Assembly: GCA_048772705.1 (NCBI GenBank)
Contig: JBLWGC010000211.1
Span: 42,795 to 106,794 of the forward strand
Direction of reading: 5' to 3'
Length of the DNA: 64,000 nucleotides
Source of the DNA: Leidyana gryllorum EB-2025a
Taxonomy: Eukaryota > Protista > Apicomplexa
The position numbers and the translations under genes were made by a program. The notes beneath the pieces were generated by a model. The model was not told the origin of the DNA and did not search any database. It saw nothing but the letters and a program-made list of their open reading frames with translations. This document shows, piece by piece, positions 24,997 through 29,363 of the stretch. The first letter of the stretch is position 1; each line of letters opens with the position of its first letter.

Positions 24997-25546
24997 AAAT
25001 ATACAACAAATCAATGCCCCCTTTTTTTCTCTTTCTTTGTGTCTTGATTGTGATTGAATAGCTCCTCCTCACTCTCTTCAACAAAAATCTCCAAACCCCT
25101 CAACAAAGATTATGCTCACGGCTGTGTGCATTCGAAGCAAGGAAGGAATGAAGGAGTCAGAGACTCACACACACACGCCCGCTCCGGTGCACTTAGCCAA
25201 CATATCAATTAGGTTGCTACCAGTCCGGCACACAGACAAACAAGCACACAGCCAGCCTGGGAGGGATTTGGGAGACAAACAGGCGGTAGCAGAATCATTG
25301 GTCGATTGAGATACATGCGACTGGATAGATGGACAAATTGGTGTGAGTGCGCTGGTGAGAACAGACAGACAGTCAGATGGATGGATAGATCGATCGACCG
25401 ACCATCCACCGATCGATTGATCGTATATGCGTGGCAGTCAGAACGTGACTTTCACAGCCAAGTATTCTACTACTTGACCTGCGAGCACTATGAAGGTATA
25501 TCTGGAAATGATGAATGAAGGTAAGTATTGTGTGAATCTATTGGCA

Positions 25547-26899
25547 TCACGGAATGATGGCTTGAGTGGTGACCAGTTGTTCAATTGTTCGCGCCACCAG
25601 CCTGCCCAAATCGGTACGACTGAATATACCCGTGAGCAGACCGCGGTCGTCCACCAGGAATATACGCTGGATGTCGGCAGCCAACATCCGTTGTACCACG
25701 AAACGCAACGGCGTCTTCTCATTGACACTAATCGATGGAAACTTCGACTTCAGGTCCAGCTGACGCACACGACTGACGTAATTGAGCGTCGGAGCCATCA
25801 ACAAACGTTCCCGTGGCGCTTGCAGATCTCCAGGCCGCAACAAAAATGGTCGAATGTCTCGCACCGAGATAACGCCAAGACTTCGACGCGGAGCTTCCTG
25901 GTCAACAACCGGCATCGCGGTGTAACCGGTCAACACCAAACGCTGCAAGGTGTCCAAAAGACAGTCAGTCTCCAGTGCTACCCGTAGTCGACCGCATCGC
26001 CATGATTCGCTCACATTCAACATCTCCGCGTCCGCCCCACTGGCACGCGAACTAGCGGACCCTGCCGGTGCTGCCAAGGCAACGTCAAAGGCCGACGAGC
26101 TCTTCCCGTCTAATCTTGAGAAAAAGTCAGCTTTGTGAAGGAGGGAGAACAAGTCGGAAGCACTGAAAATCCGTTGAAGGCTCAGTTGGCCCGTCGAATG
26201 GTCAAAAGAGAATACAGGAACACGCGGACTAATTTCAAAAGCGCGCACCAACACCTGAAACGGATCGTCCTCCCAACATGGAACAAACGTATTGCGCCCA
26301 GAAGCATTGGCAAGTTCACCACAAGGTTGAGCAAGCAAGTTCTCAACTGCCACGTCGATCGCGGAATGTGCTGTATATCGGCGGCGATCTTCTATTTCGT
26401 TCTCGTCATTCGACGATGTTGTGTCCGAGGCTCGGGAAAGCAATGGAAGGAGACTTTGCATTTCGGCGATCTCATTCGCTGCACTGTCGATAAAGTATTT
26501 GAGCACATCGCGCATGTCAATCATGCGGAAGTATTGCCGGATCACTTCAGCGGAAGGGCGATTCTTGGATGGTGGCAATCTGACTGAGTGGCTGGGGGAA
26601 TCGCACACCATGGCGGTTCGCACATGATGTTTGTCCATAGTTCGGAGAGCTTCAGCCATGCTGGTTTCTGACGCAAAACACAACGTTTGTTGAGGCGGCA
26701 AAAAAGAACTGGCCGCGTCCATGAACGGACGAGCCAAGATGCCCTGCATTTTGCGGATCGGACTGGGGGAGGCAGGAGTGAAGACCAGGTTCGGCATCGA
26801 TACGCCGCGGCCTACTTGCCGGCTCTGGAAAACCGAAGGCAGACATTTTAAAGCGGGCACTAAGGCCGCCCGCTTAACCACCAGCGCGGGACGCAGCAT
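25547..26899 (-). CDS. CBS-domain protein (about 4 CBS motifs, AMPK-gamma/SDS23-like), intronless
   Basis: SMAEALRTMDKHHVRTAMV, YTAMPVVD..SLGVISVRDI and IQRIFLVDDRGLLTGIFSRTDL; basic N-terminal extension. Confidence 0.8.
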   Translation of the reverse strand: MLRPALVVKRAALVPALKCLPSVFQSRQVGRGVSMPNLVFTPASPSPIRKMQGILARPFMDAASSFLPPQQTLCFASETSMAEALRTMDKHHVRTAMVCDSPSHSVRLPPSKNRPSAEVIRQYFRMIDMRDVLKYFIDSAANEIAEMQSLLPLLSRASDTTSSNDENEIEDRRRYTAHSAIDVAVENLLAQPCGELANASGRNTFVPCWEDDPFQVLVRAFEISPRVPVFSFDHSTGQLSLQRIFSASDLFSLLHKADFFSRLDGKSSSAFDVALAAPAGSASSRASGADAEMLNVSESWRCGRLRVALETDCLLDTLQRLVLTGYTAMPVVDQEAPRRSLGVISVRDIRPFLLRPGDLQAPRERLLMAPTLNYVSRVRQLDLKSKFPSISVNEKTPLRFVVQRMLAADIQRIFLVDDRGLLTGIFSRTDLGRLVARTIEQLVTTQAIIP

Positions 26900-27161
26900 T
26901 TGTTCACCTTTTCCCCTCAAAGTTGAGGGCAAGCAAAAAAAACATGACACACGTGTGTGCCGCCGAGCTCTTATCGCGCTGTTGTCGCTCTTGGGAATCA
27001 ATCAATCGTAACATTGGATGTCAACAATGTGTTGAGTTCAGAGGTGGAGAGGATATTTCCCGGAACGAGATATCCGTAAATAAGACAGTCGCAATGGACC
27101 TGCCAGCACTCCAGTCAGCCAGCTCCCGAATAGTTCCTTCCACAGAGCATCGATTTCTGCC

Positions 27162-28286
27162 CTACGGAAGTGCTGCAAGGCCGGCAATATGACGGGTAAC
27201 ACGTTTTGTAAGGCGACAAGTCAAAATCTCTGGGGGGCAATCGAGTTTGGTGGCGACAACATGGAGCGGTAACTTGCCACCCCAGAGAATCACATCATCT
27301 CCAACGCGATCCAGAGAGTCTATTCCAAGATCAACTAAGGTGGTATCCATACTAGGTTGATCCACAATCTCACAATAACGCCCATTAACATAGACAGGCA
27401 TCCCACGAGGAACCGCTGAGGGGTATCCGTCACCATAGCCCACTGAGACGACACCCAGACGAGTGTCTGCCGAGCACCGTCGTTTCTGGTCAAAGCCGAC
27501 AGCTTCTCCTTGGCGACATTCACGTATCGAGATAATCTTCGCTTTCAACGTCATGACTGGGCGCAAATCGATATGCGGTAGTCCACGGGGTTCACGTTCA
27601 CCGACATAACGATGCGACAACGGCCAGATCCCATACAGCATTCGGCCAAGCCGCACTGTCTCCGCAGCAATCTCGTTAGGGTAGAGTAGCAGACTGCCTC
27701 CGTCAGTGAGGCACTTTAAGCCCGCACGTCCTTTTGTGAACTGCTCAAAATCACTGACTTCTGAACTCGTGATGAGCTTCCCTTCGGGAGCATTTGACGC
27801 ACTCAAACGGGATACAAAGTTGGGTGGCTGCTTGACATTGACACACGTCGAGAGTCTTTGAAGTGCCCACACACGCGCACTCGCTTCACGAAATCCAGTT
27901 GTATGCAAGCCCAAGTCCAGCTCCAACCAAACAGCACAAGGTCGTTCTAGTTTGACGGTTTCCAGTAGAGTTAACTGAATTTCGGAGTGACAAACGATAT
28001 CGCAGGCTTCTCGGGCCAGACGGCGTAAGTCCGCAGGAGTCCACACGCCAGAGAGTACGATAATAGGTCTAAGGATGCCACTCAGTCTTAGTTCAAAGGC
28101 TTCACTGGGCCGAGCCACGGCGAAGCCGTCAACCTCATTTTCAAGGGCTCGGGCTATCGGTATGGCTCCATGGCCGTAGGCGTCGGCTGATAAGACAGCA
28201 TATACTCGGCTTCCAGCCGGAACTAGCGTCTTGGCTTGATGCAGATTATGCAGTACATTACCGAGTTCGACGATTGCAGTGGCCAT
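27162..28286 (-). CDS. alr: Alanine racemase homolog (gammaproteobacterial Alr-like), catalytically degenerate
   Basis: AVLSADAYGHG, FAVARPSEA, LRPVMTLKAKII, GYGDGYP, SMD and GDDVILWG are collinear with bacterial Alr. The PLP-binding Lys is Ser and the catalytic Tyr is Phe. Confidence 0.92.
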   Translation of the reverse strand: MATAIVELGNVLHNLHQAKTLVPAGSRVYAVLSADAYGHGAIPIARALENEVDGFAVARPSEAFELRLSGILRPIIVLSGVWTPADLRRLAREACDIVCHSEIQLTLLETVKLERPCAVWLELDLGLHTTGFREASARVWALQRLSTCVNVKQPPNFVSRLSASNAPEGKLITSSEVSDFEQFTKGRAGLKCLTDGGSLLLYPNEIAAETVRLGRMLYGIWPLSHRYVGEREPRGLPHIDLRPVMTLKAKIISIRECRQGEAVGFDQKRRCSADTRLGVVSVGYGDGYPSAVPRGMPVYVNGRYCEIVDQPSMDTTLVDLGIDSLDRVGDDVILWGGKLPLHVVATKLDCPPEILTCRLTKRVTRHIAGLAALP

Positions 28287-28339
28287 TACAGTCTGTTTGA
28301 CGAGAGGTGTCCCATCCGGGACCAACGGCTAACAACAAC

Positions 28340-29188
28340 TCAGAAACAGCATCCGCACCACACTGGACTGCGTTGCTTTCGCACATTATCGGACTCGCTG
28401 AACGATCCAATGCGCTTGAGCACCTTTCGGTCGCGATCACAACATCCGCAACAATTCAGGAAGCCACAACAACCTTCTGAACGGTCAAAAGCGCCACAAC
28501 AACAGATATTGTTGCAGCCGCCCAGACACCCTTTGTCACGCTTGGAAATGTAATACTTGCGATGGGGTCGATTGCTCATCACATGGGCACGCGGATCCAT
28601 TCCGCCACCCACGTTCTCGTAAGCATGTATTGAAGCTTGACGTTGACGAACAGCAAAACTCTCCGGAGCACCGTATACTGCAACACGTGTCTCTTCACAA
28701 AAGCCGAGGATGCGCGCACACACAAACAACAAACCACCTCACGAAGCAGAGCGAGTAGACATGCCACTGAAAGGAAGGAAAGGAAGAGAGAACGCACGAG
28801 AGGCACGAATTCTATAAGACTTACAAGGAGGGGCTGCGGCTGCTACTGCTGGATGATGATATTCAGGAGGGGGCATCATTGGAGGAACTCGATGATGATA
28901 GGGCGCAGCGTCAGCAGCTAAGCGGTAAGCATCAGGCTGATGATGCATGGTGGCGTAAGAAGCGATTTGATTTGTGGCTAGTGCTAAACTGTTTCTGGTC
29001 ATATCGTCCTCTAAAGATCGTCTATGACGGATTTCTGCCCGCGGGGGAGTGCTACGATGTCGGTGGCGAGCTACGCCATCATGCTGGCGTCCGCTGGCCT
29101 CAGCCGTCCGTCCCGTACGCCGGTCGTCCGGCGAGTGGTGCCGCCGGCTGGGGCTTTTGGAATGGTGGTGGTGGCGATGTTTGGGCAT
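28340..29188 (-). CDS. His/Arg-rich and Cys-cluster hypothetical exons, possibly the 5' part of the Alr-like gene
   Basis: The MPKHRHHHH... exon can splice (donor at 28824) in frame to the exon encoding GCLGGCNNICCCGAFDRSEGCCGFLNCCGCCD. Confidence 0.5.
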
Positions 29189-29363
29189 CGTGAAAAAAAC
29201 GCGCTTTTTTAGGTGTGTGCCGGGTGGCAACGCCAGTGAGAGATAGCTGTAGTACACCAGAGTTGGTGGGACATTAGGATTACTCGAAACCTTCACAGGT
29301 GGTGCTACGAAAAAATAATAGTGGGTGCTGGGGCCACACACCAACTGCACAACCGTAAAAACG

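Follow-up and report, generated by a model that had tools for sequence, protein, structure and literature searches.

A gammaproteobacterial alanine racemase homolog retained without its catalytic residues in gregarines

An uninterrupted open reading frame (ORF) resembling bacterial alanine racemase (Alr) lies within an intron-rich locus of the apicomplexan Leidyana gryllorum, and its product lacks the lysine that binds pyridoxal phosphate (PLP). We asked what this gene is, how it came to be there, and what its product could still do. The window that we analyzed is the whole 64,000-nucleotide stretch of DNA around it. The ORF (27162..28286, minus strand) runs from 28286 to 27162 as a single intronless frame of 374 codons followed by TAG and is collinear with Alr, as the initial annotation had stated. 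The protein matched PF01168 at residues 7 to 220 and PF00842 at residues 244 to 366, scored 233.7 bits (cutoff, 168) against TIGR00492, the two-domain Alr architecture of a barrel and a C-terminal beta domain, and aligned with E. coli Alr over residues 2 to 364 (E = 1.6e-73). An AlphaFold monomer model had a pLDDT of 95 and a TM score of 0.91 (rmsd, 1.9) to E. coli Alr. The input alignment for this model was mostly bacterial and its confidence is partly inherited, so we take the model as compatible with the Alr fold and not as independent proof of it; read in this way, the prediction agrees with the intact scaffold proposed earlier. We found no signal peptide in the protein, which is probably cytosolic.

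The surroundings of the gene are eukaryotic and apicomplexan, as first described. Its neighbors in the window are a CBS-domain gene immediately downstream (25547..27001, minus strand), RPB2, BMS1, a subtilisin gene, and an oocyst-wall-like gene; the flanking genes have GT..AG introns, and the GC content is flat across the ORF. A nearby match to an alveolin-like IMCp protein was weak and under the cutoff. The initial annotation had pointed to related gregarines as the place to look for orthologs, and three proteins outscored every bacterial protein as relatives of the window protein: P0001 (Logan ERR10900107, contig L003; 86% identical), P0002 from Blabericola migrator (EukProt; 55% identical), and P0241 (Logan SRR11177099, contig L018; 43% identical). 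B. migrator is a cockroach eugregarine that was sequenced as a transcriptome (PMC8051059). A search of 1.84 billion representatives returned only P0001 and P0241 as further members, a scan of JGI metagenomes gave bacterial-type matches only (25 to 37% identical; L011, the one match taken to translation, is an ordinary Lys-bearing Alr, and another, L013, bears a human-gut metagenome label), and the ESM Atlas yielded bacterial Alr clusters only. In all four orthologs, counting the window protein, the loop that joins the barrel to the beta domain (residues ~222 to 240; 27570-27625, minus strand) contains an insertion whose length varies and which is about 40 amino acids longer in Blabericola; model confidence is lowest in this loop.

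Both Logan contigs are syntenic with the window and, on the basis of this synteny and of the phylogeny below, are taken to be gregarine. Each carries the upstream Cys-rich gene, compared across contigs through its last exon only, and a methyltransferase-like gene; the CBS gene is also found on L003 and the oocyst-wall-like gene on L018. We conclude from this arrangement that the Lys-less alr is a genuine and old component of gregarine genomes. An intronless, bacterial-like gene could be a chimeric assembly, a contaminant, a product of sequencing error, or a decaying pseudogene. However, the frame is open in all four orthologs, the gene sits among eukaryotic neighbors in two independent assemblies, which removes the concern about chimerism raised with the first description, and the selection analysis below departs strongly from neutrality. 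We regard an artifact or neutral relic as vanishingly improbable.

The gene is bacterial in origin. In an IQ-TREE phylogeny (LG+C20), the four gregarine proteins formed one clade (support, 100/100) on a long stem, nested in a clade (97/97) of Enterobacterales, Aeromonadales, and Alteromonadales-type Alr proteins. The gregarine clade had a support of 100 in two further trees, in which its placement was not settled. The motif CxNVxxPxN is present in 4/4 gregarine proteins and is shared by 52 of the 338 homologs, most of which belong to the enterobacterial/Aeromonadales group. As placed by the tree and the motif, the donor is gammaproteobacterial, in line with the initial proposal, and the long branch leaves its genus unplaced. 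Bacterial nesting combined with native neighbors in independent assemblies is the pattern of a bacteria-to-eukaryote transfer.

We compared the residues that define Alr function (roles from PMC3485190, PMC3245724, and PMC4517790; residue states are given in the order window, P0001, P0002, P0241, and a prime is kept as in the literature numbering). At the site of the PLP Schiff-base Lys39, the window encodes Ser33 (TCA, 28188..28190, minus strand), and the orthologs read S, S, S, T; Lys39 is retained by 337 of 338 gammaproteobacterial-type homologs versus 0/4 gregarine orthologs. Sequencing error is excluded as the source of the missing lysine, since turning Lys into Ser takes two or more base changes and the site reads Ser, Ser, and Thr in three independent assemblies. 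We also considered a substitute Schiff-base lysine and rejected it, as no alignment column has Lys in all four orthologs. Within residues 122 to 129 (27900..27923, minus strand), the carbamylated Lys129 is replaced by an invariant Glu122 and Arg136 by Thr129 (T, T, G, I). Arg160 occupies the His166 site (27807..27809, minus strand; R, R, H, T), and DQPSMD replaces GRxxMD (27345..27362, minus strand), where Arg309' is gone (Q, Q, Q, N), Pro311 is new and invariant, and Asp314 (Asp313') is retained. These losses, with that of the lysine, had all been named in the initial annotation. Its further claim, that the catalytic Tyr265' is now Phe265, holds for the codon (TTT, 27492..27494, minus strand) and fails for the family; the site reads F, Y, V, T and is unconstrained, making the Phe incidental.

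Losses extend to the cofactor phosphate and substrate sites. The PLP-phosphate region (27642..27704, minus strand) is remodeled, with Asp195/Gly196 in place of Asn203/Ser204 (ligand table in PMC3485190); the Ser204 site reads G, G, A, S, with Ser in one of four, and the Ile222 site has become basic (R, R, K, K). Glu353 stands at the phosphate-binding, gating Tyr354 site (27228..27230, minus strand; E, E, H, D), and the Arg290' site reads S, S, S, F. Tyr43 and Gly221 are retained 4/4 and Arg219 (Arg212 in the window) 3/4 (R, R, R, L). Roughly 53 columns reach an invariance of at least 90% in bacteria. Of these, 7 are lost in all four orthologs, including K39, R136, R290', and Y354, and 32 are retained in all four, mostly structural Gly, Pro, and Asp and interface residues, among them Glu62, Arg362, and Asp314. 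With Lys39, Arg136, Arg290', and Tyr354 gone, it follows from the known mechanism that the protein would form no aldimine with PLP and would hold no alanine in the Alr manner. Lys39, Tyr265', Arg136, and a complete PLP ligand set are all missing from the window protein, which, judged by its sequence, is an Alr by descent and fold and lies outside EC 5.1.1.1 by its defining residues.

The gene is under strong purifying selection. A codon model of the window gene versus L003 gave a dN of 0.095, a dS of ~2.7, and an omega of 0.035 (likelihood range, ~0.02 to 0.055; 2dlnL of 406 against an omega of 1), while dN/dS versus L018 is uninformative owing to saturated dS. The value is far from 1 and bears out the purifying selection proposed earlier; neighboring native genes have similar omegas, from 0.005 to 0.053. 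A predicted intact fold without essential catalytic residues, kept in four open orthologs under this constraint, is what characterizes a pseudoenzyme.

Evidence for expression, a point raised in the initial annotation, comes from relatives. Two runs whose type is not on record, X1 and X2, gave contigs of a ~93% identical relative; neighboring genes are spliced in these contigs, so the runs are probably RNA. X1 has a gap-free 1,214-nt contig spanning 27086-28297 over the ORF, and the contig coverage in X2 spans 25485-28311, gap-free over the ORF. The Blabericola protein is itself derived from a transcriptome. We conclude that the gene is probably transcribed in these relatives, the runs being apparently RNA derived. 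A raw RNA run, X7, contained no reads from the organism at all and so says nothing about the gene. One X2 contig joins the Lys-less alr and the CBS gene on the same strand, and X1 has them apart; overlapping untranslated regions (UTRs) or read-through would account for the joint contig.

The same contigs bear on whether the ORF is a protein of its own. Upstream lies a His-rich/Cys-rich gene of two exons (28340-29200, minus strand) without a Pfam match, whose last exon (28340..28677, minus strand) is syntenic in L003 and L018. In three species the alr ATG lies only 36 to 58 nt from the upstream stop, and it has a CAG before it, so that the ORF could be the C-terminal portion of a spliced fusion with this gene. 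However, the contigs are unspliced over 28279-28677, the upstream gene is unspliced through its own stop, and the alr contigs start at 28297 and 28311, 11 to 25 nt 5' of the ATG, with the would-be acceptor included. No contig shows a joint, L003 has three consecutive stops, and the Blabericola protein begins at the same Met. The contig starts and the unspliced upstream contig favor a separate transcript, and we rejected fusion through splicing, readthrough, or frameshift, there being no joint and, in two species, an in-frame TAG ahead of the ORF; a fusion is very unlikely.

The interval from the upstream stop to the ATG (28284..28331, minus strand) is a short leader, probably the 5' UTR and start region, that overlaps the 3' end of the upstream gene and is identical at 46 of 48 nt in the 86% ortholog (L003). 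This leader and that of the CBS gene (~26895-26950, minus strand) are both near-identical in L003 despite saturated synonymous sites. Each contains a small hairpin that is not significant versus shuffles, and we rejected regulatory RNA structure, the hairpins being no better than shuffled sequences (z, -0.8 to 0.3). A 9-codon upstream ORF has its ATG at 28315 and a stop overlapping the alr ATG. Regulation by it was also rejected: it is missing in L018, its ATG lies beyond the contig 5' ends, and the CBS leader is conserved alike.

What is conserved in the protein suggests where its function may now lie. The triad of Glu62 (Glu69 of G. stearothermophilus Alr; 28101..28103, minus strand), Arg362 (Arg363; 27201..27203, minus strand), and Asp314 is retained in 4/4 orthologs. 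In the T. tengcongensis structure, this Glu-Arg-Asp triad is an inter-subunit hydrogen-bond chain (PMC4517790), and the gregarine protein may retain the dimer. Residues 86 to 100 (27987..28031, minus strand), which comprise part of a helix (84 to 92) and then a turn and strand, are a candidate new binding surface with invariant R89, R92, E93, A94, and C95. Ten of these 15 residues are invariant in gregarines versus 2.8 ± 1.2 in 3,000 divergence-matched bacterial trios, and in 15-residue windows, residues 81 to 105 are more conserved than in matched trios and residues 206 to 225 and 286 to 300 less conserved; as these helix and pocket counts come from four sequences, two of which are close to each other, we take them as suggestive and do not treat them as a formal test. 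E65, R89, R92, E93, and A94 are invariant in gregarines and highly variable in bacteria, like surface positions. We rejected an overlapping nucleotide constraint on this motif, whose synonymous sites remain variable and thus place the constraint on the protein. E122, L125, L127, E176, and P311 are invariant in 4/4 orthologs and found in 0 to 2% of bacterial homologs. As read from the alignment, conservation has shifted away from the active site and onto a new helix.

These observations give the following history. These insect-gut eugregarines descend from an ancestor that gained a gammaproteobacterial biosynthetic alr, as the tree and synteny show. The PLP lysine, Arg136, carbamyl-lysine, and substrate-entry residues were lost before the split of the sampled lineages, since these losses are common to the four orthologs. 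From the known mechanism, alanine racemization by the Alr route would have ceased with these losses, and the protein has since been kept under strong purifying selection, probably folded and transcribed. It may now be a homodimer without cofactor, in which the Glu62-Arg362-Asp314 inter-subunit triad is retained and the acidic and basic side chains of D195, E353, and R/K215 could plug the phosphate pocket, and a charged patch on barrel helices 3 and 4 (E65, R89, R92, E93, A94, and C95) may engage a gregarine partner protein. We give about even credence to this reading, in which the protein would serve as a scaffold or adaptor that is homodimeric, needs no cofactor, and offers a new surface for binding. 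Among the roles suggested in the initial annotation, a noncatalytic scaffold fits best.

The sensor roles suggested there fare worse. Because the substrate- and cofactor-binding residues (Arg136, Tyr354, Arg290', Arg309', Ser204, and His166) are lost or drifting, a canonical sensor of D-Ala, another amino acid, or PLP is unlikely. A modified version would be a small-molecule sensor or buffer in which the old cleft, now much less basic, accommodates either a B6 vitamer noncovalently or some new ligand, for example a cationic metabolite. The cleft has lost the basic K39, R136, R290', and R309' and gained E122, E176, and often D195, D309, and E353; the invariant E122, L125, L127, E176, and P311 could shape a new ligand site, and Tyr43, Gly221, and mostly Arg219 persist. 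We found no match to Pdx1 (SOR_SNZ) in the genome, so B6 may be salvaged. However, pocket residues 129, 160, 196, 265, 309, 310, and 353 vary between orthologs, the phosphate loop is underconserved, acids now stand at the PLP-phosphate site, and ligands for alanine itself are absent. The genome also has its own intron-split YggS/PLPBP gene (G000:C230:1640334-1641183). We consider such a sensor possible and on the unlikely side.

Lysine-independent catalysis, with noncovalent PLP or PMP or with invariant Glu residues serving in acid/base chemistry or metal binding, could draw on E122, E176, H100, and D124, all invariant near the barrel mouth, and B6 enzymes without Lys occur in other folds. However, the cofactor ligands are eroded, Arg219 is also gone in the most distant ortholog, and position 265 has no conserved candidate base. 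We hold new catalysis to be improbable.

The same genome carries a second, intact alr, which bears on the proposal that the Lys-less protein regulates an active paralog. This intronless gene (G000:C104:644219-645385; L002:1429-2595, plus strand) lies on a 1.27-Mb contig amid DEAD/DEAH helicase, Ku, Tho1, and HECT genes, and its codon usage correlates with that of native genes at an r of 0.59, versus 0.26 to 0.29 for its closest bacterial homologs. Its product retains Lys, Arg136, His166, Tyr265, and Tyr354. It shares 73% identity with Anaerovoracaceae-type proteins, alongside which it falls in the tree, and only 23.5% with the Lys-less copy. By this placement, the intact gene is a separate and probably recent transfer, from Anaerovoracaceae. 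The orthologs of the Lys-less copy have diverged to 43 to 55%, versus the 73% that the intact copy still shares with Anaerovoracaceae proteins, so the transfer of the latter was probably later if rates are comparable, which would make it a poor explanation for retention of the Lys-less copy.

The genome also has a bacterial-type, intronless, fold III ornithine/lysine decarboxylase homolog with an intact PLP lysine motif (L021:1150-2316, minus strand; G000:C213). No D-Ala-D-Ala ligase was found in the genome, and searches there for D-amino-acid oxidase gave no clear match, only weak FAD-fold matches.

An intact Alr with host-like codon usage, amid eukaryotic genes, could have the Lys-less protein as a prozyme-like or dominant-negative partner in a heterodimer; inactive trypanosomatid partners at ~30% identity are known (PMC3663545). 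However, the two copies come from different phyla, the intact one appears younger, the search matches include no gregarine ortholog of it, and Phe265 would be unable to complete a shared active site. The suggestion of a paralog regulator is weakened by this independent, Clostridia-type acquisition (24% identity), and we judge a heterodimeric partnership quite unlikely.

Comparison with known systems sets the protein apart. It shares with bacterial Alr (E. coli 2RJG/3B8U; TIGR00492; PLP fold type III) a two-domain fold at 38 to 43% identity and retains the AYGHG and GYGDG scaffolding, Tyr43, Gly221, the Glu69-Arg363-Asp313 triad, and CxNVxxPxN. Unlike bacterial Alr, it lacks Lys39, Arg136, carbamyl-Lys129, Tyr354, Arg290', and Arg309', leaves Tyr265' and His166 unconstrained, has a new invariant helix motif, and resides in a eukaryotic host. 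PLPBP/YggS is likewise a noncatalytic member of the Alr-like barrel family, but YggS consists of a single barrel and uses a lysine to bind PLP, whereas the gregarine protein has two domains and no such lysine, and TIGR00044 matches a locus other than this gene. Pseudoenzymes are usually duplicates of a host enzyme which they then regulate.

The trypanosomatid AdoMetDC prozyme and DHSp (PMC3663545) are also protist-parasite enzyme homologs without a catalytic lysine, but they are duplicates that activate their partner, whereas the intact gregarine Alr is unrelated in origin and probably a later acquisition. As the intact Alr (Anaerovoracaceae) and the Lys-less copy (Gammaproteobacteria) stem from separate transfers, the latter is not a duplication-type prozyme. 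Antizyme inhibitor and inactive ODC homologs (cited in PMC3663545) are fold type III pseudoenzymes kept for a regulatory, protein-binding role; they are duplicates of the host ODC and bind antizyme, whereas the gregarine protein is of the Alr type and arrived by transfer. Bacterial-type alr genes transferred to Schizosaccharomyces pombe and Adineta vaga are described as racemases (PMC5169069), in a survey text with no mention of Apicomplexa or Gregarina; the gregarine copy is likewise a bacterial-type alr in a eukaryote but is inactive by sequence and conserved across lineages.

We are aware of no Lys-less Alr family described to date, and full-text literature searches, which excluded subscription journals, returned no description of a gregarine Alr or an Alr pseudoenzyme. 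A foreign cell-wall enzyme without a paralog in the host has lost its catalytic residues and yet been kept across deep gregarine divergence, unlike the usual duplication origin of pseudoenzymes, and it probably has a new, so far undescribed nonenzymatic job. More speculatively, and with considerable doubt, this may be the first Alr pseudoenzyme family, in which a cleft rebuilt for a new metabolite and a new partner-binding helix together would form a lineage-specific metabolite-sensing regulator of eugregarines. The protein is directly testable, being a soluble 374-amino-acid protein with solved close relatives and the intact Alr of the same genome as a built-in positive control. The literature that we searched holds no description of D-alanine metabolism in Apicomplexa. 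Two independent alr transfers have reached one genome, and the second suggests an importance of D-alanine metabolism for gut gregarines.
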